From NCBI GenBank assembly GCA_965112735.1, contig OZ218955.1, positions 1,426,001 through 1,490,000 of the forward strand: a stretch of 64,000 nt of DNA, written 5' to 3'. The position numbers were made by a program, and so were the translations under genes. How positions within the stretch are numbered: the stretch's first letter is position 1; each line of letters opens with the position of its first letter. Below, piece by piece: positions 1 to 62,372 of the stretch. Origin of the DNA: Phaeosaccion multiseriatum (Eukaryota > Protista > Ochrophyta, other classes). The notes under the pieces are model-generated. The model worked only from the letters and a program-made list of their open reading frames with translations. It ran no database searches and had not been told where the DNA came from.

Positions 1-480
1 TCCGGCATATCCTCCTCCTCCTCCTTCTCCTCCTCTACAGGCGGCAACACCGTCTCAAACGACCGCCCCACAGGCAACACCCCGGACGCCTGTTCAAACG
101 CTCTTGCCACCTTCAACACAAGCCCCTCCCCCATACTCGGTCCTATAATCTGTAGCCCAATCGGCAAGCCACTCATCGCCTCGATCCCACAGGGCAGGGA
201 CAGTGCCGGCAGTCCGGCAAGGCTGGCAGGCACGGTAAACATGTCATCCCGGTAAGCAGACACCCCCCTACGCTCTGCCTCCCCCAGAGGGTAGGCGGTG
301 GTCGGGGTCGTGGCGCACACAAACACATCTGCCGTCTCAAAGGCCGCCGCAAAGTCCTCCCGCAGCCCTTCCCGGATCACCTGTGGGAGTGTGTGCGCGT
401 GTGCGTGTGTGCGTGCGTGTGCGTGTGTGTGTGTGGTCGTGTGTGCGTGCATACGGGCGGTCAGCAGAAGCAACGAACGA

Positions 481-522
<42 letters not shown>

Positions 523-2083
523 AACGAAGGCATATGTTTGCCCGACCCTCCCCTACCATGATTAAGAGAGACGCGAGAGAGCCAGGAATACAAGTAGAGA
601 GGTTCAACGACGGTTCAGACTGTCACTTGGTATGACCAAAGCCCCTCGCTCTTCAGGAGCTCCATCACCAGAAAGACGTGGTTAGCCTCGTACATATCCA
701 TCCCATCCTCGCGCCCACGCACTCACCTGAGCCTTGTTGTAGTAGGCGTCTGAGTAGCCCGCCGACAGACTAAAGGTGCCGAGAATGATGCGCTGCTTCA
801 CCTCATCCCCAAAGCCTCCACCACCCCCTGCCTCATCGCCAGCTGCATCGCCTCCTGCAGCTGCATGGGCTGCTTTCCCTTTACCCTTCCCCCTGCTCTG
901 CAGCATCACCTCTCTGGAACTTTCGGCCTCCTTGCTGCGGTAGCCATAGCGGATGCCGTCGAAGCGGGCCAGGTTCGCACTGGCCTCGCTCAGCACATTG
1001 ACATAGTAAGCGGCACACTGCTGCTCCAGCAAGGGCAGGCTGACCTCGACAATCTCGGCCCCGAGAGCGGTAAATTGGTTCACCGCCCTCTGCACGGCCG
1101 CCCCGATATGAGACTCCACCTTGTCCCCCCCCAACGCCTCCTTGATAACTCCGACTCTCACCCCGACGAGAGGAGGCTGCGGCTCAAGCCCCTCCCACTC
1201 CGTCTCGAGGTCGAGAGCAATGTCGAGGTCGGCCACATAAGGGGGCACAGGGGAGGGGGAGCACGTGGCATCTCCTCCTCCGCTTTCCATGCCAACACCA
1301 CCTCCATCGCTGCCTGCAATCACCTGCAGCAGCAGCGCGGCGTCGGTCACTGTGGAGGCGATGGGTCCAACGCAGTCGGTGGACGAAGCGTAGGCGATGA
1401 GCCCCTTCCTACTCACTCTGCCGTACGTGGGTTTGAACCCCACCACCCCACACCAGGCCGCCGGTTGCCGCACGGATCCGCCCGTGTCTGTCCCCAGCGC
1501 CCCCAACACCATCCCAGCCGCCACCACGGCCGCCGAGCCCCCGCTCGAGCCCCCCGGCACGAACTTTTTGTTCCGTGGGTTCTTCGTTTGCTTGAACGCC
1601 GAGGTCTCCGTTGTGCACCCCATCGCGTACTCATCCATGTTCGCCTTGCCGATGATGATGGCCCCGGCCTCCTTCAGTTTACGCACCACCGTGGCGTCGT
1701 AGGTAGGCACGTAGCCCTCTAGGATCCTAGAAGCCGCGGTGGTGGGCACGCCCTTTGTGCAGAGGTTGTCCTTGACGGCAATGGGCACGCCCAACAGCTT
1801 CATGGTCTTGATATGCGCGTCGCCGCTGGCAACGAGGGCGTCTATCTTCTTGGCCTCGGCGATGGCCTGCTCTCCCTGCACGCTGATGAATCCCTCCACT
1901 CCGTCTGCGCCCTGGTCGAGGGCCTCGATCTGGGCCAGCGCCTCGCGCACCAGTGCCTCAGACGACATGGCGCCACTTCGAACTGCGGCTGCAGCGTCTC
2001 TTATGGGACTGCTCGACCCCGCGAGCGCCACACCAGCCCCGCGACGACGCCCTCCACTCACACCCACCCGTCTCCGTCCCGAC

Positions 2084-2125
<42 letters not shown>

Positions 2126-2301
2126 CCTTGGCTGAGGCGGGAGGCTTGCAGGATGGACGGCCGAGGAGCGGCCGTTTGAACGAAAGCGTCCACCTTGCAC
2201 ACAAGCAGCAGCACCGCCTGCACAGCAGCCGCCGCCTGCAGTAGCGGCTCATTCCTCCGCCGCTTCCTCTCCCTCCGCCGCTGGGCCATGCTCATATTCA
2301 T
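1..2301 (-). CDS. gatA: Glutamyl-tRNA(Gln) amidotransferase subunit A (amidase family), organelle-targeted; 3' end runs off the window
   Basis: Exon 1 2301-727, GT-AG intron 726-381, exon 2 380-<1. Amidase motifs GVPIAVKDN, GKANMDEYAMG, PGGSSGGSAA, LGTDTGGSVRQPAAWCGVVGFKPTYGRVSR, NLARFDGIRYG, FGDEVKQRIILGTFSLSAGY. Exon 2 gives DDMFTVPASLAGLPALSLPCG...GLPIGLQIIG. The N-terminus has a hydrophobic stretch ending VDA-F, like a bipartite plastid signal. Confidence 0.95.
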
Positions 2302-2788
2302 ATTTCAGCAGGCGATCTCAAAAGCGCCATCTAGTGCCATCCAGTTTCACTGCCAGTGCTATCGCTTGTTGCAGTTCCCCGGGGTTTTTTGATGACGAGG
2401 GCAAGAGTTTTAGCTCCTCTTCTTGGACCAGGGAGGACGCCCTGCGTGTGCAATTAGTAGCGAGTTCTATAAAGCTTGCGCTAGGACGTGCGTACACAAA
2501 GTAGTAGTACGCCACACAATTGAGTGTAGTTGCCAAGCAGCGGCGGCAGCTTTAGGAGCAGCACCTTCTGTGTCAGCTTCGAGGGGGCACGAGTTCGGGA
2601 GGGCAATCGGCGCGTAGTGGTTTTTTGTAAGGAACGAGGAGCTGTTGCAAAAGCCGTTTCCCACGTGAGGGACAGAGGGACAGAGGGACAGAGAGAGAGA
2701 GGGAAGGGGCCTCCTGCCTCCAAACAGGGCTGTCATCTCCTGTTGTCGGCCAGGAGTGCAAATCAAATCCAGGAGTGCAAATTTAATT
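2302..2788. promoter_or_regulatory. Probable bidirectional promoter region (gatA / VDL1)
   Basis: 487 bp between divergent ATGs of two plastid-targeted genes. TATAAA at ~2468; short direct repeat CAGGAGTGCAAAT at ~2751 and ~2770. Confidence 0.45.
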
Positions 2789-46829: not shown

Positions 46830-48486
46830 ATGCAGATCCCCGAGGTAAGAGTATTTGCCCCCCCCCCCTACTCTAGTCTTCCAGTCTCCTCTGGCCCTTG
46901 TCCCTCACCCCTTTCCCCCTCCATCCCTCGCTTGTGGGTTGCTCTTGTGCCAGGCTACCCGCCTTGACCGAGCCATCAGATGTGGCCAAAGTGTCCGGCA
47001 GGTGCAAAAGGCGGTGAGGGCCCTCGTCGCGAAGAACGGAGGAAGCAAGGCATGCCTGGACGAGCACCTGAGTGAGCAAGGATTTTCAGCCATGCATGCA
47101 GCCGTGGGACACAAGAGCGTTGACATTGTTGCGCTTTTGCTGCAAGAGGGAGCGTCGCCGAATGTGCGAGATGCGGAGGGCAGAACTGCGTTGATGAGTG
47201 CGAGTGGTCCTTTTTCAGATGCTGCTGTTGTACAACAGCTCCTCTCTGCTGGTGCTGAAATCAACTCAACAGGGAGCGACGGATATACGGCTCTCATGGG
47301 GGCGTCCAAGGGAGGGGCAGTTGAGATTGTGAACATGCTGCTCTCCAATGGTGCCGATGTAAGCTTGGCTTGCACTAATGGCCTGACGGCGTTGATCATT
47401 TCAGCAGAGGCGGGCCAGCATGAGGTGGTGCAGCAGCTTCTGTCGGCGGGTGCAGAGGTGGACTGTGTAGACGCGGAGGGACATACGGCTCTCCAAGACG
47501 CCTCATTTAACGGACTCGAAAGTGTAGTCCAGCAGCTGATTTCCGCCGGGGCGGAGGTCGAGAAGACAAGTCCCAAAGGCTTCACGGCCTTGTCCTGTGC
47601 CTGCATGAGCGGGCATCTTGCGGTGGTGCAGCTCTTGCTTTCGGCCCACGCTAACCCCAACAATCATGTTGATGGCAGAGATATTGAAGGCCACAGTCCG
47701 TTGGTGATGGCCGCCGAAAAAGGACACGACAGGGTCACACAGCTGCTGCTCACCTCTGGGGCAGATCCGAGTTTGGCCAGCTCAGAATACTATCCGCTTG
47801 CCGTAGCAAGCCAAAATGGTCATGGTCTTGTAGTGGATCAGCTCATTGCAGCCGGTGCCGGCCTCGAAAGCCGTAACGGTGGAAAGGGGATAACAGCGTT
47901 GATGGTGGCATCTGAGAGGGGGCATCGAAGTATTGTGCGAAAGCTGCTCAGGGCTGGTGCAGAGGTTAATGCGACTAATGGGTATGGAGGAGCGCTACAC
48001 GTGGCATCTCAGGAAGGCCATGCTCCTGTCGTGAAGGAACTCATCTCAGGAGGGGCCGATGTGGAGATGCTGAATACTCGTTACAGAGCCTCAGCTTTGC
48101 GCTTAGCTGCTGTGCATGGTCATGCGGCGGTGATCCGTGAGCTCCTGTCTGCTGGAGCTGATCCTGAAACTGAAACTGAAGTCGTAAGCTCTTTTGGGAC
48201 GCCCTTGTACAGTGCTGCACTCGCGGGCCACAGCGGGGCGGCCTTGGAGCTTCTCTCAGGAGGGGCCTCAGTGGAAAGGGCTCTGTCTCAGGCTCGAGGG
48301 CTCAACGATGCAGGCGCCTGTGTTCAGTGGCTTCTGGCCGCGAGCAGACAGCACTTTGCGTCACAAAGCGCGTTGGACCTGATGCGGGGCACTGACCGTC
48401 TCTTTGGCAAGGAAGGGAGGCTGAAGGTGTCGCAGAGAGAGGTGAGCTCTGAAGTGCTGCAGGAGGTGGCGGAGGAGATGGCATGA
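46830..48486 (+). CDS. Ankyrin-repeat protein, copy A (~12 ANK repeats, ~515 aa)
   Basis: Exon 1 46830-46844 (MQIPE|gtaaga), intron to 46953, exon 2 46954-48486 (1533 nt). Tandem G-x-TAL-x-x-A...G...VV..LL..GA repeats. Confidence 0.9.
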
Positions 48487-49040
48487 TAAGCTCGCCATCC
48501 CCCCCCCCCCCTGTTGGGAAGAACAGCGGGCGGTCTCTCGAGGTCGTCTCACACAGTCAGGCACAAGGAGGGGCGAGGAGAAGAGAGAAGGGTACCTTGC
48601 CTCACGCCTCAAGTCTCTCTCCTCGGAGGGCTCTGCCAAGAGGCAGAGGTGGGAGGAGGTGAGGGGGAGAAGGAGGAGTAGCGAGGCAGAAGAGACCCAT
48701 GTGACTTACCGGATAGGGGTCTGGGAGCGCCCGGCAGCTACCGCGACACCGGCACCGCCGCCGCACGCCATACGCCGCCGCGGAGGCTCTGAGCCACAGC
48801 CGTGACAGCCTTGGCGCCGGGCAAAGCAAGCCCCCCCTTCTTCTGTTGCCGCGTGGACTCCATCCACTGCCTTCTACTGGGGCGGGGGAATGCTCAGGAC
48901 CATGGGCTGTGCCTCACTGCCTCATGAGAGGAGCTGTCGACCCAGCGCCGTCGCGCCTTCCCACGAGCCGGCAACCGCCACCGCTGGCGAAGGGCAAGAA
49001 GGAGTCCGTGAAGGAGGAGGAGCTGGGGTAGGAGAGAGGG
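46920..49040 (+). repeat. Left arm of a ~2.1-kb inverted duplication
   Basis: Reverse complement of ~60255-62372. Covers the intron 3' end, the ANK exon and ~550 bp downstream. Confidence 0.95.
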
Positions 49041-49569: not shown

Positions 49570-52500
49570 TTACCGCTCCTGCTGCTGCTGCTGGGGCTGA
49601 ACGTTGGCCCCCACCTTGCCACTCCCGTCCACAAACAGCGGCACGCCAATGTTGGCACCAAACTGCAACACCATCGGCGAGGAAGACCTTGTTCCGTCCG
49701 GGGCCAACACACTCAAATCACTGTCATTGTCGCTGTCCACACCATCGTCCGATCCGTTCATATCCTGTTCCAAAGCCGCCCGCGCCTCTGCGGCCAACCG
49801 CGCCGACCCGAGTCTCTCCTGCTCAGCAGACCCAACCCCCTGCTCCCCCTGTCCGGAGGGGACGCGCGCAGAGGACGCAGAGGAAGCAGAGAAGGCGGAG
49901 TTGTCGTCGCGTACCTCTTGGGGGCGACTGGCGCGGACGTACGCGGAAGCAGGTGGGTTTCCGAGTCGAGGAGGAGAGGGGCTTTGCTCATCTACACGAA
50001 CACGTTCCCTCGGTCGGCTGTCCCCCGCTGCTGCTGCCGCCACCGCCGCCGCATCGTCCGCAGCCCTCCACGCGCCTCTCTCTCCTGCCGACGTACGAGG
50101 CTGCGAAGCGCCCCTCGCCTGCTCTCTCGATCGCTCCCTGCTATCTCCTCTTCGTCCGTCCCTTGGTGCGCTGAGAGGCCTTGCTGCTGGAACAGGCCGT
50201 CTGCCCCCGCTGCCTCCGAGACTCACTTCCTCGTCGGCCACCGCCGGGTAGATGTTACTTTGACCCGACGACCCTGACCTTGCCCTTCCGCCACCGCCAC
50301 CTTGCCCCCAACCCCCCGATCCTCCTCCTCCCTCACCATTTCTGAAACGCGCCTCCTCGGAGGGCGACCTCTTGTAGTGGTAGCTCTCTCCATACCCACC
50401 CACCCCGCCCACCGACTGCGACCCCCTCTCTCTCTCAATCTCTCGCGCCCTTGCCGCTCTCTCCCTCGACACGCTTCGGCCGTATTCGTCGCCCACCAGG
50501 GTGCGGTCCTCATTCTTGTTCAGCTCCATCAACGAACCCGAGCTGGAGGCACCCTGCATCTGCATCGACGCCCTTCGTCCTCCCCCCCCTTGCACCACTC
50601 TACTCATGGAGCGGGTAGAGTACGCCAAGAGGTCAGGGGCGGAGTTATTGTTGGGACCGTACTGACCCCCACTCGGAAGGGGGGGCAACGACATGTTGCT
50701 CACGTCCATCCCTCCTCCTCCGTACCCTCCTCCATAGGCCGGGCCCGTGAAGCTTGCCGTCGAGTTGGAGCGTGTCATGGTCGTACGGCGCAACTCATTT
50801 CGACTCGTCTGCATCACTGCCTTGGAGAGGTCGTAGTCGGACGGACCCACCGCCCCGGGCACAGCGCGTGGGGCATCGAGTACAAGCTCCCCGGGGGACC
50901 CGCTCCTCGTGCCCCTCGAAGGGGAAGCAGAAGAGCCCTTTCGTCCTCGTCCTGGTCCTCCTGCTCCTGGTCCTCCTGCTCCTGGTCCTCCTCGCCCTCG
51001 CCTGGGAGGAGTGACCCCGACTCCTGCGTTTGAGCGTGATGACTTGCTCATACCCGTAGACAGGTCAAATGCGGGGCTGATGGGCGGTAATCGTACCCCG
51101 GCCTCACTCTTGCTGAGCAGGTCCGACACACTCCCTCCTCCTCCACTCGTCACGGGCGGGGGCAGTCCTCCTCCTCCTCCTCCTCCTCCTCCTCCTCCTC
51201 CTCCTCTTCCTCCTCGCTCTCCTCCATCTCCTCCCCCCTTGGACATGCTCCTGAGCCCATTCTCGTAGTTGTACTCGTAGCGGTGATCGGACACTCGACT
51301 ACCCTCGTCGTACTCACTGTAGCCTTCATCCCCGTCCTCCCGGTCGGCCTCGAAACCGTCATCCTCATGCATCATCTCAAGCTGCCCCTGCTGCTTGTCC
51401 ATCATGTCGTGGTTGTCCTTGGTGCGCGACTGTATGGCCCACTTGGTACAACAGAGCACCGCTCCAAACAGTCCGAACAACCCGGCCACCACCAGCAACG
51501 CCAGCAGCCCGTCGTTCAACACGCGCGGCTCGCTTTCACCAGACGCGGATCGCGACCCGACACCAATGACTCCCGCAGAGGCCATCACCCCAGAGTCTCC
51601 TCCGGTAAAGAAAGGGGTGTCGGGACCGACCCCTGTGGAGCTATCGGGATGCTCGAACAGCTCATCCACCTCCCTCCAAGAAAGGTTGAGCACACGTGCC
51701 TCGGCATCGCACGAGCCGTAGGCAACGAGGAGGCGCTCCCCGTCCAAGGAAGGGGTGAGGCCGGAGCTAAACACCGGGCAGTTGTCGGGGTCGCCGCTCA
51801 CCACCGGCAGGGCACGACTGACGGCTAGAGGCCGATAGGGTTGTTCGGCAGTGAAGGAGAGAAGGTAGTTGACGTACTCGCCTTCCGCGCTGAGGGTGTG
51901 GAAGGTTCCCAAGAAGTAGTCGTCAAGGACAGTGTTGCGGATGCGAATGGCGTTGGAGCCTCCGTGAATGTCCAGTTTCAATGCGCTGCCAAAGAGCTCC
52001 AGGGGGGTTTCCACCACGGGGTACTCCTCCACCACCTCGTTCAACAGCGTGTCCACACGCACAGCGGTGAAGGGAGAGATGTTCTGAATGAAGCCCTTGG
52101 ACTCATCTTCTCCGTCATCGAGGTCGAAGGACATCCAGTTCTTTTGGAAGCTTCCGTCGTCGAGGTTTCCGGGTTGGAGCTGGCTGGCAAACACCACCTG
52201 AGTAGGAACAAGAGGGGGAGGGAGGGGAGATGTCAGCAAAAGCAAGAGCAAGAGCAAACACAAAAGCCAAAGCAAAGGCCCAAAGCCTCTACTCCCTCTC
52301 CCCTCCTCCCTCCCTCCCTCCCTCCCTCCCTCCCCACTGACTTACCGACTCATCCCCCTCCGAGCGTGTGCGCAAGTCCCCAGCAGTGACGAACATGGTA
52401 CCCACCGTCACACCCCCCGCTGTCGGGCACTGCTCGAACGGTTCGTTGGGCAGGGTAGAGAAGAAGGTCAAGGCCAGTCGGTCACCCGCCTCCGCGTCGT

Positions 52501-55405
52501 CGCCCGTCGGGGGCAGCAGCGTGAGCCTGGGGTCCTGGGGTCCCGTTACCACCGCCTGTGTGTAAGTGTTGTTGACTGGGTGGTACACCGGCGCCACCAC
52601 ACATGGGGTCCAACTTCGCTGGGAAGGAGGCGCCATGGAAAGCACCTGCAGCCCGTCGGAAGAGAGAGGTTCGAGGGTTACCGGGTCGACTTCTCCGAAG
52701 ACAATGTCGCTGTACCAGACGGTGGTGAGCAGCTCTCCCGTGCCCTGGGGGCCGTCCAGTTTTTCCCCCGGGGTGGCGTCGTGCTTGACGCGATGACGGC
52801 GAGCGGCGAGGAACATCGAGGGCTCTCCGGCGGCGTTGGGCACCTGCGATTTATTCAGTGGTTATGTGAGTTACGTAGTAGAGAAGTTGGTCATTCACAT
52901 ACAGGGAAATTGGGTCAGTTTATCAGTTTCATTGATTGCTTGGGTCATATGAGGGTATCGAATAATGATCACCCCCCCCCCCCCACCCACCCACCCACTC
53001 AGGGAATTACCCGACACACTCACTCACTACACCCCGCCCTCCCTCCACTCTTCGTGCTGCGCCCCACTCAACTCACTCACTCACTGAATCCATCCATCCA
53101 TCCATCCCTCCATCCCTCCCCTCCGTCCTTCCTTCCCTCCGCCCTTTGTACTACCAACACCCCAACAAAACACACAAAACATAAAACCATTTCATTTACC
53201 TGCAGAACGGAGGGGTTGATGAAGGCGTAGTCCCCCCCCCCTCCATTGGCCATGGGCTCAGCAGCGGTGAGGTTCAGTCGCGCATCCATCGCTCCAGTGT
53301 CATACTCCACAAACGATGCGCCTCGCGTGCCTGCCGCTCCTCCGTCGTGGTTGGTCCAATCTCGAATCACTTGAGGAGGCACCAGGCCCCACAGAGCCCA
53401 GAGCCCGACCAAGCTGGCAAAAATGATGGTCATCCGACGGCGGAACAGCTTGTCGGGTTGTTGCGGCATCAACAGGTTGGCGACGTAACTCATGACAATG
53501 GCAAAGGCAAACATGACCAAGAGGAGGCCAAGGTCTACCCATCCATTCCAGACGTAAAAGACAATAAACTGGAAGACGTAAATCGGGTAGGCGAACTTGC
53601 CCAACCCGGAGAAGATGCGCGTCTTCAGCACGACGGACAGCGGGTCTGCACCCATGGCCAGGCCAATGATGAGCAGTCCGTGGAGCGGAGCCAATGCGCC
53701 TAGGCGGCACGAGAGCTTGAAGGCTGGGGGCTGAATGGCGGGAACAGTAAAGAAGAGGGCGAGGAGGAGGCTGCCGATGGATGCACCGTACTTGAGGACC
53801 GCAGGGGCGCCCGTGCGAAATTGGCTGTTTGGGGGTTGAGGGAGCCGGGGGGATGGCAGTGGATGGTTGGTGTGCGTGTGTGTGTGTGAGAGAGAGAGGG
53901 GGGGATGCGAGTGCTCAAGCAAACGTTGTCTGACGCAGTTGCCCTGCCCCTCCCCTCCGCTCCCCTCCGCTCCCTCACCTCACCGACCCCATATGCTTCC
54001 TTCCCTTCCCTTCACCCACGCCACACACCCTTCGAAAAGCAAAACCTTTGGGGAAGTTGTTCTAAAAACTCTGGAACTTGACACTTACGCGTAGACGCAG
54101 GCCAAACCCACTCCGAAGGCGTAGATGTGCAAGTAAAAGAGCGGGAAGAAGGACAGCATGGTAACGAATAGATCCTTCCACGTGTCGTTGTCTCCATAGT
54201 TGTGGAACTCGTACCACTCCACACTGGCCCCAACCATTGGGGGGATGGCGGCGGCGAGCCAACCGAGGACCGAGAGGAAAGCCATGTAACCGACGAGGGT
54301 GCGGCGGGAGAGACCGAGGGTGAAACACTCGATGCGGTTGTGAAGGAACCTTTTGAGTGGGTGGGAGTGAGTGAAGGAGGGAGGGAGGGAGGGAGAGACG
54401 GAGGGAGAGATGGAGGGAGGGAGGGAGGGAGGGAGGGACGTAAGTAGGGGTGGGGAGGAGAGGACAGAAGGAGACGCATGGGGGAAAAAGCCCCCATCCT
54501 ACTTGCTTCGTCAGCACACTCCACCCACTCCACTCACTCACTCACTCACTCACTCACCAGAGGGGGATGATGGTGCTGAGGAACCAGCAGTGGCCCTGAA
54601 TGACTTGCTCCGTAACCTTTGGCAGCCACGACTGGGTCAGGGTGAGGAGTGAAAAGGCATGCAGCCACGTGGTGTCCTGCCAAGTGTCCTTGTAAATGGC
54701 GACGGCGAATCCCAACACTAGACCCAGCAGGTATATGGGGTATATGCTCTTGATGCGGTCGTACATAAACGAAGCGGCAGGCGTCTCCTCGTAGGGCTCA
54801 AAGTTGGCAACCCCTCCCACCACTCCTCCTCCCACGGCCTCAACAGCCGCGGCATGCATAGCTCTCTTCCTGAGGGAGGAGTACGTAAGCACAAAGGCCG
54901 ACAACATGATGAACCACGGCGCCCATGTGAAGCCCCACTCCGCTATGTAGTAGTCGGACACGCCCACGGGGTTGGTGAAGAGGAAGTGTCCGCCGATGAT
55001 GTGGATGGCAGCCAACAGGCGCAATCCGTCAAACCCCCCCACGTAGGGGTAGCTCTTGGCGGCCTTGGCGACGGCGGCCTCGACCTCGGACTCTGACTCC
55101 TCGTTGGCGACAGTTTTGTTCTTGTTGACGTTCTTCTTGTTGTTGTTGTTGTTGTTGCTGTTGTTGTTGCTGTTGTTGTTGTTCTTACCCACAGAAGCAC
55201 CTGCTGCAGATGCTTTGCTGTTGCTGCTGGTGGCTGTGGAAGCTGCCATGGCGGTGTCAAAGTTCGATGCGTCCGGGTCAGCAGAGCTCGTGTTGACCCT
55301 CGTTCTGTCGGGGCCAGAGGGAGCGGAAACCGCAGAAGATCCAGAAGCAGAAGCCGCAGCAGCCAGTCCGACCGTGTCAACCGGCGCGCGTGGTCCCTCC
55401 TCCTC

Positions 55406-55462
<57 letters not shown>

Positions 55463-56553
55463 TCGCTGCTGCTGGAGAGCAATGGCTTGCGAGCCCGTGG
55501 GGGAAGAGAGCGTATCGATGGAGTAGTCCTTGGAGATGCCCATGGACATAGAGTCATTGTCATCGTCGCCGAAATCGGCCTCTGTCTTTCCCTCCTCGGA
55601 TCGCTCCGGGTACTTGTGTTGTTCCGTCGCTGTTCCTCCTGCCGTGGTTGCTGCTGCTGCGGCGGCTGCGGCTGCCGCAACTGCTGCCACTGCGGCGGGC
55701 TCGCCTCTTCGACTGCCATCCCTGCCCTTGAGACCCATGGCACCGTCTGCAGAGGACAGCGGAGAAGTGTCGGACTTGGGCGGCGTGATAGACTGCGACG
55801 AAGACGAAGAAGGCTGGGACATCGACACCCCCTCCTTGGAGGAGCTGCCGCCGATGACGGCCCTCTCACTACTCCCACTACCGCTCTTGGTGAGGCCCTT
55901 CATACCCGCCCCTCCTCCGGGGCGAATGTACACAGCGGATGCCTTGGAACGGCTGCGCCCACGAGAGCATATGCGTCCGACAGAGTGCAACAACCCCCCG
56001 AGGGTCCGACCCCCCTTGAAGAGAGTCCAGAGCACGAAGATAGACGCGAGGACGACACAAGCCCACTGCAGACCGTTGTAGTCCCAGGGCTGCACTCGCT
56101 TAATCGCGCCTCGGTTGGACACGTCGGTGGTGAAGGCAGGGGTGGCGTAGGCAGGCACCACGCTGTCGTCGAGGATGAGATCTTTGTACAGGCTAAGGTC
56201 ACCGGCAGTGGCACCGTCCTCGTCGTCGTCGCCTCCTCCGGCTGAGCGCGCCACCACCTCCTCTCCGTCCGTCAGGGTCGTCGAAGGGTAGGAGGTGATG
56301 CGGCACCCTCGATGGTACTGCTGCCACCATTCGGAGTCGGCAGCAGGGACGTACGACTGGCAAGTAGGCGCCCCCACGAACTGAAAGAGACAAAAATTAA
56401 CATTTACGTGGGGAGGGAAGTGTGCAAGTTGGTGGGGTTGGGGGGTTGGTGTGTGTCTGTGAATACTTTTGCGCTATTCGACAAGACAAGGCAACACAAG
56501 GAGGACACACACACAACACATACACACACACACACAACCACACACACACACAA

Positions 56554-56585
<32 letters not shown>

Positions 56586-56831
56586 CCACACACACACAAC
56601 CACACCTGCTCCTCGCACTCGTGTGCCTCTTCGATCTGGTCGGCTTCACACGCGACACTGATTAGTCTCTGGAACAACACATGGTTGCTGATGTGCGGGG
56701 CGTGCCCGGCCACCAGGGGGGGCGCGTTGGTGGCGGTGAGCACGGTGCCTTCGTAGTCCAGGAAGTGGCCTTCGTACTCCTCTGCCAGCTGTAAATAGCA
56801 TGAGTGTGAGAGTGAGATTTGTGATGTGTGT

Positions 56832-56862
<31 letters not shown>

Positions 56863-56911
56863 CGTGTGCGTGTGTGTGTGTGTGTGCGTGTGCGTGTGTG
56901 TGTGTGTGCGT

Positions 56912-56942
<31 letters not shown>

Positions 56943-56981
56943 CATGTGTGTGTGTGTGTGTGCGTGTGCGTGTGTGTGTGT

Positions 56982-57029
<48 letters not shown>

Positions 57030-59100
57030 GCGTGTGTGTGTGTGTGCGTGTGTGTGTGTGTGCGTTTTTTGGGGGGGGGGGCGGTGGAGTTGAAAAAATG
57101 CAGAGAGAGAGAGAGAGAGAGAGAGTGAGAGAGACAGAGAGCAAGCAGCAAGAGGCAAGGGGTTCAGATAAGATGAATCGATCGAGGCTTGTGTGCCTTT
57201 CCCTCTCCCTCTCCCTCTCCCTCTCTCCTTCCCTCCTCTCCCTCTCTCCTCATCCTCATCCTCCCTCCCCCCCCCCCCCTTCCTTACCTGGCGAGCCATG
57301 TCGTTGGCACCCTCGAGGAAGTTGGTAAAGCCCTCCACCCCGAGGAACACGGGCACAAGACCGGGGAAGTCCTCCTGCAAGCGAGTGAGTATGCTCGTGT
57401 ACTCATCCAACAAGAACACCAGCTGTGAATCCACGCTGGATTCCTGCAGCTCCACCACTGCCTCCGAACCCTCAAACTCGCAAGCCCACGTGGCCCCCTC
57501 CTCAGGATACAGACAGAAGGAGTACCACGTGCCCAGTGATATGACAACGTAACCGCTCGCATCCCCCCTACCAGCATCCTGCATGCTGTCGAGGTGGCCG
57601 AGCAGCTCGGGGGCAGACCTGCCCTGACCAAAGAGCATGGAGGGCCTAGAGCGAACGTCTTTGGCAAACACCTCCTCACACGACTGCCTTCCTTGGTCGA
57701 GGTAGCCCATTCGTGCGGGCATGCCAGCACTGTCGGGTCGAAGGACGACACTGGCGCAGGGAATGGAGTTTGGGTCTCCGTCGCCAGTGGGGTTGTTGCT
57801 GTCCCTGTAGAGCCAACTCTGGAAGAAGAGGGCCTCGTCGTACACTTGGTCCAGCTGTGAGAGGGGGGTGCGTTTGGGAGGGGGGGGGGGAGTTTGGAGG
57901 AGAAGGCGGGGGTGGGTGGGTGGGGGGGGGAGGATGGAGTGAGTGAAGTAGTCGGTTCGGCCGAGAGGGTGCGGATGATACGAAGGGGAGAAGAGCCGCT
58001 TGGGATTCCCAAGTAGAGAGGCTGTACTGCTCTTGTTCCGGACGAAACAAGAATTAGTGGGACAGGAGCCAGAGCTGTAGTACACAAACAAAACTCCCCC
58101 CCCCCCCCACACACACACACACACGGCACGACATACACACACATACGGCACGCACGAACTCACGCACTCACCCAAGGCCAGACGGCAGCCAGGATACCAA
58201 GGACGTCGCTGGCTCCCAACAAGACCAAGGCCGTGTCTGTGGCATCCTCCCCGCCCAGGGAGGCCAGGCATTGGTTCACCTCTGTCTGGGAGAAGAAATG
58301 GTAATGGCAGTCGTGAGGGTCTGCGAGACCGACGCGAGGGACACGAGAGAGGGGAGGGAGGGAGGGAGGGAGGGGGGGTTGTGAGTGTGTGTGTGTGCTG
58401 GAGTTTGTAAGAGAGTCGAGTGAGTGGGGGGGTTGAGCCTTTGCCCCCTCCGCCACATCGTTAAGACGAAGGAACATGTGCACACGTGAAGGGGAACGAG
58501 ACGAGAATGTTGATGCTCTTTTCCATGGTGAAAGGTTAGGAGTAACGCTTGTGTGCCGACCACCCGATGGACCCGGAGAGAGAGAGAGAGAGAGAGCGAA
58601 GGGCCCTCTCGTGCCGTTGGCATCATGAAACACATGCACCCCCCCGAATACCCCGACCCGCACTCACTTCTCAGCTCAAAGGTATTGCAGATGCGATTGC
58701 CGTCTTCGTCAACGTCGCACCGCCACTGCCCAGGACTCTGTACATCCGCACAACGTTGCGTGCACGAGTCCCGGAGGTTTGGCTCGGGCACCACCACGAC
58801 GGGCGCCTCTGGGATGTCATCCTCTTGGGCTGCGAGAGGAGAGATTGGTACAGGGCAACAAGGGGCGGGGCAGATTTAATTCCTTCCTCTCCTTTTGGCC
58901 TCTCCTTTCCCCTTCTGTCTCTCTCTCTCATTCTTTCCCCACTGGCCTTGCAACGTGGGCGCCCTTCATCCCTCCTCTGCCACGCTCTCCCCTTCCCTAT
59001 AATTTCTTCCCCCTTCCATCCCTCCCATCTCACCTTGGACCCCCACGACGAACAATGACGCCGCAAGACCAAGCGCTGACACGAGCGTGAAGGCGCGCAT
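49570..59100 (-). CDS. Secretory multi-domain membrane protein, ~2320 aa: signal peptide - SGNH/PC-esterase-like - TM - low-complexity linker - acyltransferase-3 - five-bladed beta-propeller (GH130/GT91/GT108-like) - TM - long disordered tail
   Basis: Exons 59100-59034, 58829-58668, 58320-58172, 57854-57288, 56788-56606, 56380-54558, 54349-54089, 53824-53200, 52843-52346, 52197-49570 (6963 nt, all GT-AG, phases consistent). Signal [41 protein letters not shown]...[33 protein letters not shown] (R-x10-H), [67 protein letters not shown]. Confidence 0.85.
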
Positions 59101-60254: not shown

Positions 60255-62372
60255 CGCTTTCTCTCCTACCCCAGCTCCTCCTCCTTCACGGACTCCTTCT
60301 TGCCCTTCGCCAGCGGTGGCGGTTGCCGGCTCGTGGGAAGGCGCGGCGGCGGTAGGTCGACAGCTCCTCTCATGAGGCAGTGAGGCCCCCGCCTGAACCT
60401 CCACCCGCCCCAGTAGAAGGCAGTGGATGGAGTCCACGCAGCAACAGAAGAAGGGGGGGCTTGCTTTGCCCTGCGCCAAGGCTGTCGCGGCTGTGGCTCA
60501 GAGCCTCCGCGGCGGCGTATGGCGTGCGACAGCGGTGCCGGTGTCGCGGTAGCTGCCGGGCGCTCCCAGACCCATAGCTATCCGGTAAGTCACATGGGTC
60601 TCTTCTGCCTCGCTACTCCTCCTTCTCCCCCTCACCTCCTCCCACCTCTGCCTCTTGGCAGATCCCTCCGAGGAGAGAGACTTGAGGCGTGAGGCGAGGT
60701 ACCCTTCTCTCTTCTCCTCGTCCCTCCTTGTGCCTGACTGTGTGAGACGACCTCGAGAGACCGCCCGCTGTTCTTCCCAACAGGGGGGGGGGGGGATGGC
60801 GAGCTTATCATGCCATCTCCTCCGCCACCTCCTGCAGCACTTCAGAGCTCACCTCTCTCTGCGACACCTTCAGCCTCCCTTCCTTGCCAAAGAGACGGTC
60901 AGTGCCCCGCATCAGGTCCAACGCGCTTTGTGACGCAAAGTGCTGTCTGCTCGCGGTCAGAAGCCACTGAACACAGGCGCCTGCATCGTTGAGCCCTCGA
61001 GCCTGAGACAGAGCCCTTTCCACTGAGGCCCCTCCTGAGAGAAGCTCCAAGGCCGCCCCGCTGTGGCCCCTTCTTGCGGCAACAAACAAGAGCGTACCAA
61101 AAGAGCTTACGACTTCAGTTTCAGTTTCAGGATCAGCTCCAGCAGACAGGAGCTCACGGATCACTGCCGCATGACCATGCACAGCAGCTAAGCGCAAAGC
61201 TGAGGCTCTGTAACGAGTATTCAGCATCTCCACATCGGCCCCTCCTGAGATGAGTTCCTTCACGACACGAGCATGGCCTTCCAGAGATGCCGCGTGTAGC
61301 GCTCCTCCATATCCATTAGTCGCATTAACCTCTGCACCAGCCCTGAGCAGCTTTCGCACAATACTTCGATGCCCCCTCTCAGATGCCACCATCAACGCTG
61401 TTATCCCCTTTCCACCGTTACGGCTTTCGAGGTCGGCACCGGCTGCAATGAGCTGATCCGCTACAAGACCATGACCATTTTGGCTTGCTACGGCAAGCGG
61501 ATAGTATTCTGAGCTGGCCAAACTCGGATCTGCCCCAGAGGTGAGCAGCAGCTGTGTGACCCTGTCGTGTCCTTTTTCGGCGGCCATCACCAACGGACTG
61601 TGGCCTTCAATATCTCTGCCATCAACATGATTGTTGGGGTTAGCGTGGGCCGAAAGCAAGAGCTGCACCACCGCAAGATGCCCGCTCATGCAGGCACAGG
61701 ACAAGGCCGTGAAGCCTTTGGGACTTGTCTTCTCGACCTCCGCCCCGGCGGAAATCAGCTGCTGGACTACACTTTCGTGTCCGTTAAATGAGGCGTATTG
61801 GAGAGCCGTACGTCCCTCCGCGTCTACAGAGTCCACCTCCGCACCCGCCGACAGCAGCTGCTGCACCACAGCGTAATGCCCCCTCTCTGCTGAGCTCATC
61901 AACGCCGTAAAGCCATTAGTGTCAGCCAAGCTTACATCGGCACCGTTGGAGAGCAGCATGTTCACAACCTCAACTGCCCCTTCCCTGGACGCCCCTATGA
62001 GAGCCGTATATCCGTCGCTCCCTATTGAGTCGATTTCAGCACCAGCAGAGAGGAGCTGTTGTACAATAGCAGCATCTGAAAAAGAACCACTCGCAAAATG
62101 CAACGCACAGTTGCCCTCTGCACTTCGCACATTCGGCGACGCTCCCTCTTGCAGCAAAAGCGCAACAACGTCACCCCTCTTGTGTGCCACGGCTGCGTGC
62201 ATGGCTGAAAACCCTTGCTCACTGAGGTGCTCGTCCAGGCATGCCTTGCTTCCTCCGTTCTTCGCGACGAGGGCCCTCACAGCCTTTTGCACCTGCCGGA
62301 CACTCTGGCCACCTCCGATGGCTAGATTAAGGCAGGCAGCCTGCCTTGTACAACGCACAAGCGAGGAATGTA
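60255..62372 (-). repeat. Right arm of the ~2.1-kb inverted duplication
   Basis: Reverse complement of ~46920-49040. Confidence 0.95.

Follow-up and report, generated by a model that had tools for sequence, protein, structure and literature searches.

The DNA analyzed here, referred to as the window, is a 64,000-nucleotide stretch of the Phaeosaccion multiseriatum genome, and one locus in it raises the question of whether a single gene encodes an SGNH-type domain, an acyltransferase-3 (AT3) membrane domain, and a GH130-like propeller, and what such a protein would do. Splice junctions were read by hand, and 10 phase-consistent exons on the minus strand from 59100 to 49570 gave a 2320-codon frame, as the original prediction had described. 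Exon lengths total 6963 nt (2320 codons plus the stop codon), all 9 introns are GT..AG (6 were checked a second time), and phases carry over correctly across the exon junctions. Every motif quoted in the prediction was present in the translation. From the N-terminus, the protein has a signal peptide, an SGNH-type domain, one helix, a long linker, AT3 plus a predicted 11th helix, a GH130-like propeller of five blades, another helix, and a tail, and the features are distributed as follows.

Exon 1, 59034..59100, minus strand: start codon and hydrophobic signal-peptide-like segment, 22 codons + 1 nt; GT donor at 59033.
Exon 2, 58668..58829, minus strand: Cys-rich beginning of the mature protein; frame runs on from exon 1 (phase 1).
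Exon 3, 58172..58320, minus strand: start of the SGNH-like domain; C-H-Y-H-F-F...C-L motif; block I G-A-S with the candidate nucleophile Ser.
Exon 4, 57288..57854, minus strand: SGNH-like domain core with the VISLGTW block.
Exon 5, 56606..56788, minus strand: end of the SGNH-like domain; block V G-H with the candidate catalytic His; FQR...C...ECEE motif.
Exon 6 (whole), 54558..56380, minus strand: divided into three parts below.
Exon 6, first part, 56018..56380, minus strand: conserved Cys motif C-Q-S-Y...H-R-G-C, then the first transmembrane (TM) helix (about 56018-56074).
Exon 6, middle, 55037..56017, minus strand: ~330-residue low-complexity linker (poly-A, poly-Q, poly-N); GC3 0.70; frame shared with both flanking domains.
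Exon 6, end, 54558..55036, minus strand: first AT3 helices, R-x10-H motif; PF01757 match.
Exon 7, 54089..54349, minus strand: middle AT3 helices; collinear with Chrysoparadoxa protein P0001.
Exon 8 (whole), 53200..53824, minus strand: AT3 end, 11th helix, and propeller start.
Exon 8, first part, 53377..53824, minus strand: last AT3 helices (Pfam match about 53482-53793) and a predicted extra 11th helix (about 53377-53433).
Exon 8, end, 53200..53376, minus strand: start of the predicted luminal propeller, INPS motif; paralogues L002 and L003 encode it and the remaining propeller in a single exon.
Exon 9, 52346..52843, minus strand: propeller; AARRH, W-x-S, and G-P-Q-D-P-R (candidate proton-donor Asp).
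Exon 10 (whole), 49570..52197, minus strand: remainder of the propeller, last TM helix, tail, and stop.
Exon 10, first part, 51508..52197, minus strand: propeller; QKNW, IHGGS, FH, and YGSCD...R; 51-52% identity to paralogues.
Exon 10, last TM helix, 51451..51507, minus strand: hydropathy peak 2.71; also in L002, L003, and P0001.
Exon 10, end, 49570..51450, minus strand: Gly/Ser/Arg-rich tail of ~620 residues and stop codon; one open frame.

Exon 6 alone joins the end of the N-terminal domain, the helix, the linker, and the AT3 start, and exon 8 alone joins the AT3 end to the propeller start. In L002 and L003, the AT3 end, the entire propeller, and the final helix lie within one exon. In the exons for the domains and the linker, GC3 was 0.70-0.78, against only 0.65-0.66 in the tail, where codon positions 1 and 2 had values of 0.63-0.69 and 0.59-0.62; because this codon periodicity is weak, the tail is supported mainly by its long open frame. 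No domain or Pfam match was detected in the tail, and the tails of relatives are far shorter. The ~330-residue linker is presumably cytosolic. A search for RNA data for the gene found none; the only 4 public runs holding the stretch did so as contigs that span the introns too and therefore behave as genomic DNA. The exon structure and the motifs of the prediction are confirmed, and we consider it probable, jointly with the glycan-acylation function proposed below, that the locus is one real gene for one 2320-residue multi-pass membrane protein.

An exhaustive search returned 200 relatives. Among those of at least 800 aa, 50/53 had AT3 immediately followed by the propeller, and among those of at least 1100 aa, 26/36 also had an SGNH-like domain. 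The domain order is kept at all four propeller loci of the own genome (three paralogues in addition to the window gene), in gene models of Chrysoparadoxa and Guillardia, and in many other algal and protist proteins. All three domains occur in two ORFs free of interruptions (1551 and 2021 aa; intron-poor eukaryotes, metagenomic) and in a 1724-aa transcriptome ORF. Other N-terminal modules in the family are ILEI, PAN, and WSC, and one transcriptome-derived relative, P0016, has ILEI, an SGNH-like domain, and the propeller without AT3. A widespread eukaryotic family, marine algae included, normally has this architecture, which is a variant of known O-acetyltransferases. The architecture had been put forward as undescribed, and no description of an AT3-propeller fusion was found in the literature searched; however, such proteins are already in public databases, where the named members (Chrysoparadoxa, Guillardia, and Cymbomonas) are all annotated as "hypothetical".

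The membrane block could be assigned by family match. The exon 6 product scored 38.6 bits with Pfam PF01757 (cut-off 31; E 8.6e-10; profile 3-132), and the exon 8 product matched the same profile at 212-319 (E 0.0033). An R/K-x10-H in the first helix defines the AT3 motif (PMC9558356), and exon 6 encodes F-D-G-L-R, ten residues, and then H; CWFLS and a further 12-residue motif are also carried by the block. PF01757 was the sole acyltransferase family matched by the membrane exons in the Pfam scan, the Cas1_AcylT type not being among the matches. The Pfam match and the R-x10-H motif support the AT3 assignment. Simple hydropathy, which does not resolve all ten core helices, placed a hydrophobic segment between the end of the Pfam match and the propeller. 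Judging by hydropathy and by analogy with OafB, both soluble domains (SGNH-like and propeller) would be luminal, a placement consistent with the signal peptide, with one helix following the N-terminal domain, and with the predicted 11th helix.

The N-terminal domain follows the hydrophobic signal-peptide-like start and contains the motifs LLGASD, VISLGTW, and VAGHAPH. The exon 4 product is 30% identical to P0001, and exon 4 had thirteen matches in the own genome. The fold was modelled with AlphaFold on residues 55-385 of P0001, this ~30% identical relative, rather than on the window protein. The best structural match of the model (pLDDT 72, pTM 0.76) was the plant xylan O-acetyltransferase XOAT1 (6cci, Z 13.4, 201 residues aligned), the best 50 matches were all SGNH proteins (Z 9.4-13.4), and the best Foldseek matches were GDSL esterases (8.5e-05). 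These modelling results support an SGNH fold for the N-terminal domain. The block I Ser and the block V His were each invariant in 25/25 aligned family members; in the P0001 model, the Ser is located at the junction of strand 40-45 and helix 47-55, and the His is in the loop preceding helix 285-302. L013 is the only paralogue without the Ser, and it is also without the His; the C-Q-S-Y...H-R-G-C motif likewise follows its N-terminal domain. The aligned family members have no D-x-x-H spacing for a block V Asp, the residue preceding the His being mostly G, S, or A, and the block III Asn is unconserved, with Q, S, P, and others at the matching position. CE2 enzymes with a Ser-His pair minus the Asp are known, and the block III Asn is absent from XOAT1 (PMC9487903). 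Exons 2-5 had no Pfam match at E up to 1, including PC-Esterase PF13839, and PC-Esterase clusters occurred at 0.90 among the ESM Atlas look-alikes of L013. The Z score of XOAT1 differs by no more than about 1 from those of ordinary GDSL esterases, which makes the link to PC-esterases specifically a weak one. The prediction of an SGNH/PC-esterase-like domain is therefore upheld for the SGNH fold, as modelled on a relative, but not by a PC-Esterase Pfam match.

The domain after the predicted 11th helix contains the motifs INPS, GPQDPR, QKNW, IHGGS, and YGSCD, followed by the final hydrophobic helix. Its fold was modelled on paralogue L002, which is ~50% identical and has the propeller in a single exon, rather than on the window protein (pLDDT 86, pTM 0.88). 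The model matched GH130 structures at Z 24.3 (5ayc), 23.0 (4udg), and 22.9 (9fj8) with 280-307 residues aligned, GH43 enzymes at about 18, and GT108 at 18.6; the Foldseek value was 1.3e-08. In the Pfam scan, neither soluble domain of the window protein matched any family, and GH130 PF04041 had no match in the window exons or the paralogues. Weak PF04041 matches were found in 4 of 44 family members, two of which reached 24.9 (the best) and 21.1 bits against a cut-off of 26 (profile 94-319), and one family member had a weak BMT match. ESM Atlas look-alikes of the propeller carry GH130, BMT/GT91, and DUF1861. The model supports a five-bladed propeller with GH130 mannoside phosphorylases as the closest structures, and the predicted likeness to GH130, GT108, and GT91 was borne out by the model, the near-threshold Pfam matches, and the Atlas look-alikes together.

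Seven propeller residues, R60, D149, K225, N226, H309, Y317, and R376 (L002 numbering), were each invariant in 43/43 aligned sequences with an overall identity of ~25%. The Asp of G-P-E/Q-D-P-K/R, which is kept in 43/43, aligns at about profile position 101 in the two near-threshold Pfam matches, and its correspondence to UhgbMP D104 is approximate. H309 is roughly at the spacing of the GH130 phosphate-binding pair (UhgbMP R168, H231). In the family alignment, with the active site matched approximately, no conserved Arg was found at the place expected for the phosphate-binding Arg of GH130 phosphorylases; a nearby position is His (29) or Arg (12). The window protein has Gln at the Glu of E-K-N-W, which is Glu in 40/43 relatives. 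As far as the sequence can indicate, each of the three domains retains its key residues.

Taken together, these data suggest a multi-pass protein, located in the secretory pathway or at the cell surface, that probably attaches acyl groups, most likely acetyl, to a glycan. By analogy with OafB, OatA, and CASD1, AT3 would take an acyl group from cytosolic acyl-CoA and offer it on the luminal side. The invariant Ser of the SGNH-type domain, paired with the His, could then accept the acyl group and transfer it to a sugar hydroxyl, as in XOAT1 and CASD1. The propeller, in the position that SGNH occupies in bacterial AT3 proteins, would handle the beta-linked sugar being modified. We lean toward the propeller being itself catalytic rather than only glycan-binding; if it is, an inverting nucleotide-sugar glycosyltransferase like GT108 or GT91 would be the most likely activity by analogy, with a glycosidase less likely. 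Tentatively, the propeller could belong to a new family allied to GH130, GT108, and GT91 and be active in the lumen as an inverting glycosyltransferase dependent on a nucleotide sugar, a possibility to which we give well under even chances. If true, a single chain would add a sugar and then acetylate it, and it would be the first glycosyltransferase in physical linkage with an AT3 conduit for acetyl groups. Its product might be an acetylated glycan with beta linkages, found in algal scales, walls, or mucilage.

The same O-acyltransferase could also carry the propeller as a non-catalytic module, similar to a lectin, that keeps the acceptor glycan positioned above the luminal AT3 exit or before the SGNH-type domain. 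We regard this as rather unlikely, and it has evidence in its favor: the propeller sits after helix 11, where bacterial AT3 proteins bear an acceptor-facing domain, the other N-terminal modules of the family (ILEI, PAN, and WSC) are of sugar-binding types, the GH130 phosphate-binding Arg was not found, and a binding pocket may be as conserved as an active site. However, the candidate proton-donor Asp in E/Q-D-P-K/R is invariant, as are K-N, H, and R that parallel the catalytic inventory of GH130, and such conservation at ~25% identity is commoner in catalysis.

A trimming role is improbable. In that scenario, an SGNH-type acetyl-esterase and a propeller beta-glycosidase would remodel or degrade an acetylated glycan, with AT3 secondary or re-acetylating. 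The structural matches of the SGNH domain are mostly esterases, GH130 enzymes with signal peptides are hydrolases (PMC7660257), and P0016 combines ILEI, the SGNH-like domain, and the propeller without AT3. Yet AT3 is fused directly to the propeller in nearly all long relatives (the 50 of 53 above) and retains its donor-binding motif, the top structural match of the N-terminal domain (XOAT1) is a transferase, and no second carboxylate was identified as a possible hydrolase base. It is very improbable that the ten-exon model is an artefact fusing 2-3 neighboring genes, for instance one for an AT3-propeller protein and another for a secreted SGNH-like protein: no RNA data were found for the locus, its linker and tail are of low complexity, and the codon periodicity of the tail is weak, but each domain boundary is spanned by a single exon and the order is repeated at each of the four propeller loci, in the models from Chrysoparadoxa and Guillardia, in the uninterrupted metagenomic ORFs, and in the transcriptome ORF.

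The preferred reading, a glycan O-acyltransferase, has its nearest parallels in CASD1 (human sialate O-acetyltransferase) and Cas1p (Cryptococcus), in which, as predicted for the window protein, a luminal N-terminal SGNH/PC-esterase-type domain precedes a multi-pass acyltransferase of the TmAT superfamily, and whose glycan substrates lie within the secretory pathway (PMC2824669, PMC12423673), as is probable for the window protein. In contrast to these, the window membrane domain matches PF01757 with no Cas1_AcylT match listed, its two domains are separated by a helix and the ~330-residue linker, and AT3 is followed by the ~400-residue propeller, another helix, and the long tail. The bacterial proteins OafA, OafB, OatA, and PglI share the AT3 core with R/K-x10-H; in them an extra 11th helix places a soluble domain across the membrane (PMC9558356), as predicted for the window protein, in which, however, that domain is a GH130-like propeller rather than SGNH, and the SGNH-type domain is at the opposite end. 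Plant TBL/XOAT1 proteins likewise have a Ser at block I and a His at block V and are Golgi-type and lumen-facing, a likeness that rests on predicted topology for the window protein, whose motif is G-x-S rather than G-D-S, without the D-x-x-H Asp or a Pfam PC-Esterase match. TBL proteins are polypeptides separate from their presumed membrane partners, whereas the window protein is predicted to be one chain.

On the propeller side, the GH130 beta-mannoside phosphorylases and hydrolases RaMP1, UhgbMP, Uhgb_MS, Teth514_1788, and BT3780 share the five-bladed fold with the L002 model (Z 22-24); the Asp of E-D-P-K/R, invariant in the family of the window protein, is at the same profile position in the near-threshold Pfam matches of two relatives, and the E + K pair resembles a pattern tied to beta-1,2 specificity in GH130 (PMC7660257). 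However, identity is ~12%, the window protein has no Pfam match, and the phosphate-binding Arg was not identified. GH130 is a cytosolic single-module enzyme, with more than 99% of its phosphorylases mono-modular, whereas the window propeller is predicted to be membrane-tethered and luminal. GT108 (Leishmania MTP1-4) and GT91 (fungal beta-mannosyltransferases, Pfam BMT) are propeller-fold inverting transferases that use GDP-mannose; the L002 model matched 2b4w (Z 18.6) and 6q4w/x/y/z, and BMT clusters occurred among the Atlas look-alikes. The similarity of the family's propeller to these transferases is weaker than to GH130, and GT108 enzymes are cytosolic, unlike the predicted luminal propeller of the window protein.

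The gene lies on the minus strand of the window and comprises 10 exons, with all borders read from the sequence.

Exons of the window gene, in the order of transcription; every border was read from the sequence
59100-59034, minus strand, exon 1
58829-58668, minus strand, exon 2
58320-58172, minus strand, exon 3
57854-57288, minus strand, exon 4
56788-56606, minus strand, exon 5
56380-54558, minus strand, exon 6
54349-54089, minus strand, exon 7
53824-53200, minus strand, exon 8
52843-52346, minus strand, exon 9
52197-49570, minus strand, exon 10

All 9 introns start with GT and end with AG (6 were double-checked), and their phases are consistent (1, 1, 0, 0, 0, 2, 2, 0, 0). Borders, phases, and a summed exon length of 6963 nt, equal to 2320 codons and a stop, gave the same figure as the original prediction of ten phase-consistent exons and a frame of 2320 aa, and the motifs quoted in that prediction were all found in the ORF translations. 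GC content at the third codon position was 0.70-0.78 in the exons of the domains and linker. Because it was only 0.65-0.66 in the C-terminal tail, support for the tail comes chiefly from its one uninterrupted frame. Long microsatellites of the (CA)n/(GT)n type pack introns 4 and 5 (56400-57150); public contigs break there, and over 56900-57099 the depth is zero. The arms of an inverted repeat, each about 2.1 kb long (46951-49037 and 60260-62343; 95-98% complementary), flank an 11.2-kb segment that contains the gene.

Four public sequencing runs, all from one sample and none recorded as RNA, contained the stretch. Contigs from these runs spanned introns and exons of the gene, breaking only at simple repeats. 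Two apparent joints in the reads were rejected as evidence of splicing, their sides being 18-21 bases long and in low-complexity sequence. The linkage of the domains, however the gene is spliced, is nevertheless direct. Exon 6 is a single open frame of 1823 nt. It runs from the conserved end of the N-terminal domain through a hydrophobic helix and about 330 residues of low-complexity linker into the first helices of the acyltransferase-3 (AT3) block; exon 8 holds the last AT3 helices, one extra helix, and the first propeller motif. Propeller loci number 4 in this genome (67 Mb, 22 contigs), and all are preceded on their own strand by the N-terminal domain. In 2 paralogous loci (L002, 130-2364; L003, 724-3321) a single exon encodes everything from the end of AT3 through the complete propeller to the last helix. 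All three domains are also found in uninterrupted ORFs of relatives (1551 aa and 2021 aa, plus a 1724-aa transcriptome ORF), and the relatives therefore make the three domains as one chain. For the analyses of individual domains, the window exons were searched one by one, and for whole domains the work drew on relatives in which each lies in one piece.

The membrane block was assigned by its match to Pfam Acyl_transf_3, to which the exon 6 product scored 38.6 bits, exceeding the cut-off (31), and the exon 8 product aligned to the end of the same profile. An R/K-x10-H motif, regarded as essential for donor binding in AT3 proteins (PMC9558356), is present in the first AT3 helix. One additional hydrophobic segment lies beyond the end of the Pfam match, which is the arrangement of bacterial AT3 proteins with a fused soluble domain (PMC9558356).

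The exons of the N-terminal domain matched no Pfam family. They were aligned with paralogous copies and with proteins of Chrysoparadoxa and Guillardia, and residues 55-385 of the Chrysoparadoxa relative (P0001) were folded (pLDDT 72, pTM 0.76). Against 48,161 chains, an aligner independent of Foldseek placed the Arabidopsis xylan O-acetyltransferase XOAT1 (6cci) first (Z 13.4, 201 residues aligned). The best 50 structural matches were all SGNH proteins, including OatA, PatB, sialate esterases, and acetyl-xylan esterases, and Foldseek agreed. In the model, the Ser of G-x-S lies where the first strand meets the first helix, the block I position, and the conserved His occupies the loop preceding the last helix, the block V position. 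Iterated searching with a local profile aligned 25 members, and both residues were invariant in all 25. No block V Asp is present; a review of SGNH enzymes notes Ser-His pairs among CE2 enzymes and, for XOAT1, a block III that is atypical (PMC9487903). The SGNH call made from sequence is thus borne out, and the modeled fold argues firmly for an SGNH-type domain. Because XOAT1 led generic GDSL esterases by only about 1 Z unit, membership in the PC-esterases is suggested by the model only as a lead.

Neither the window exons, the propeller-family profile, nor the family member closest to GH130 gave anything useful when searched by sequence against solved structures. The single-exon paralogue L002 (835-2079), which is about 50% identical to the window exons, was folded with a 44-member alignment. 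The model was all-beta, with pLDDT 86 and pTM 0.88. Foldseek ranked GH130 beta-mannoside phosphorylases and the Uhgb_MS mannoside synthase at the top (1.3e-08), followed by Leishmania GT108. The independent aligner gave Z scores of 24.3, 23.0, 22.9, and 22.1 for GH130, 18.6 for GT108, and about 18 for GH43-type propellers. Pfam GH130 was touched by 4 of the 44 family members; two of these matches were pinned down, at 24.9 and 21.1 bits where the cut-off is 26, and were collinear over profile positions 94-319. Clusters retrieved from the ESM Atlas by shape and features included GH130, BMT (GT91, fungal beta-mannosyltransferase), DUF1861, and giant-virus GT2-TPR-propeller proteins. The fold closest to the modeled propeller is GH130, with GT108 and BMT-bearing look-alikes after it, in agreement with the GH130/GT91-like propeller originally proposed. 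The nearest Atlas clusters were mostly viral, including phage hypothetical proteins and giant-virus proteins in which such a propeller is joined to a GT2 glycosyltransferase and TPR repeats.

Overall identity within the propeller family is about 25%, and still a number of polar residues vary little or not at all. These are the N-P of INPS, the R and H of A-A-R-x-H, W-x-S, the Asp of G-P-E/Q-D-P-K/R (43 of 43), K-N-W (K and N in 43 of 43), an H or R followed by G, and, farther on, an invariant H, Y, and R. In each of the two Pfam matches just below the cut-off, the invariant Asp aligns near profile position 101. For GH130, the inventory is the donor D104, R59, an E/Y preceding the donor, K or R150, H231, and D304 (PMC7660257). 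Judged by sequence, the two patterns appear to run parallel. The phosphate-binding Arg of GH130 was sought in the conservation of the family and was not found. The window protein retains all of the conserved propeller residues except that Gln replaces the Glu of E-K-N-W, which is Glu in 40 of 43 relatives. In its exons 9-10 (52197-52843), Gln rather than Glu also precedes the invariant Asp (G-P-Q-D-P-R), as in the closest relatives.

On balance, we favor a catalytic propeller. If it is catalytic, an inverting nucleotide-sugar transferase of the GT108/GT91 type would be more likely than a glycosidase. That the propeller merely binds the glycan, with no catalysis of its own, appears rather unlikely. 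A deacetylase, FpGalNAcDeAc (6n1b), was also a good structural match (Z 20), meaning that the propeller fold can handle sugar acetyl groups as well, but this reading was not adopted because the conserved motifs follow GH130.

A search of the organism's own genome located paralogues of the window gene on contigs C1 and C4. On C1 (G000:C1:4707122-4719387; L002, L003, L006, L008), two full paralogues are arranged head to head, with about 11 kb between them. Immediately upstream of their AT3-end exons are ORFs that start with the same residues, suggesting inverted duplication or gene conversion in the recent past. The fourth paralogue (G000:C4:3646004-3648758) is broken into short pieces and has one TAG within its propeller match, which could be an intron or the sign of a damaged copy. 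At least a dozen loci in the genome carry the N-terminal domain, and only four have the propeller. One copy of the N-terminal domain in a single exon (L013, G000:C8:2200822-2204151; ORF 457-2487, minus strand) has G-A-E in place of G-x-S and also lacks the conserved His of the family; since both residues are lost, it may be inactive. A canonical GH130 was looked for in the Phaeosaccion genome, and none was found.

Word-based homologue searches came back nearly blank, as they depend on 5-residue words in common and this family has diverged too far. These blanks say nothing about absence, because an exhaustive HMMER profile search, covering 1.84 billion representatives, recovered 200 relatives at E up to 0.001, 91 of them at E up to 1e-10. 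With local profiles, AT3 directly preceded the propeller in 50 of 53 representatives of at least 800 aa. After iteration, an SGNH-like domain was found before AT3 in 30 representatives, including 26 of the 36 that were at least 1100 aa long; several of the remaining ten look truncated, since they begin inside AT3. Additional N-terminal modules in the family (ILEI, PAN, WSC) are of sugar-binding types. Members are unnamed or hypothetical proteins, such as CAM9132528.1 of the ochrophyte Chrysoparadoxa australica, XP_005834830.1 of the cryptophyte Guillardia theta, and KAK3253314.1 of the green alga Cymbomonas tetramitiformis. Two metagenomic contexts were examined, and both are eukaryotic. Genes for dynamin, actin, and deoxyhypusine synthase adjoined the family member in one, and HA-domain neighbors were present in the other. 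A transcriptome ORF from EukProt (P0016, 1013 aa) combines ILEI with the SGNH-like domain and the propeller, and shows neither an AT3 domain nor any clear membrane block. It resembles the two luminal domains in soluble form, and its composition ties the SGNH-like domain and the propeller to each other.

Taken together, the exons, the Pfam match of AT3, and the folds of relatives confirm the original observation and support its reading of the domains. The architecture and the conservation of key residues were established, and the folds were established on relatives. The signal peptide would deliver the SGNH-type domain to the lumen, and the helix that follows would lead back into the cytosol, placing the linker there. 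AT3 would begin on the cytosolic side, by analogy with OafB, the 11th helix would make the propeller luminal, and the last helix would leave the tail in the cytosol. AT3 could then move an acyl group from cytosolic acyl-CoA across the membrane, the Ser of the SGNH-type domain could accept it and pass it to a sugar hydroxyl, and the propeller could handle the beta-linked sugar being modified. A function in glycan acylation or building is plausible for the window protein.

The marine algae and protists that carry this family have cell coverings that are poorly understood at the enzyme level, and the family is a concrete candidate for acetylating, and perhaps also building, a surface glycan in them. 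More than 99% of proven or predicted GH130 mannoside phosphorylases are single-module proteins (PMC7660257); a membrane-tethered luminal relative joined to acetyl transfer would be a new setting for the fold. For enzymologists, the family is also a natural system in which to ask what receives the acyl group from AT3, a distant SGNH domain or whichever domain docks at the AT3 exit. The abstract and outline of the report on the xanthophyll acetyltransferase XACT (PMC13080032) showed no link to the window locus, and this candidate was set aside.

Reviews of AT3 and TmAT proteins describe AT3-only, AT3-SGNH (bacteria), and NRF-AT3 (animals) proteins and make no mention of a propeller partner (PMC9558356, PMC12423673). 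A 2010 survey of PC-esterase architectures mentions no propeller fusion (PMC2824669), and a full-text literature search found no paper on an AT3-propeller fusion. The architecture is widespread, yet undescribed as far as this search showed. The first two-thirds of the window protein resemble CASD1/Cas1p, in which an N-terminal luminal SGNH-type domain is followed by a TmAT membrane domain, although the membrane domain here is of the AT3 type. Compared with OafB and OatA, the propeller occupies the place of their SGNH domain. Given these likenesses and the missing propeller in the reviews, we therefore regard the window protein as a new architectural variant of the known glycan O-acyltransferases, and not as a new kind of system.
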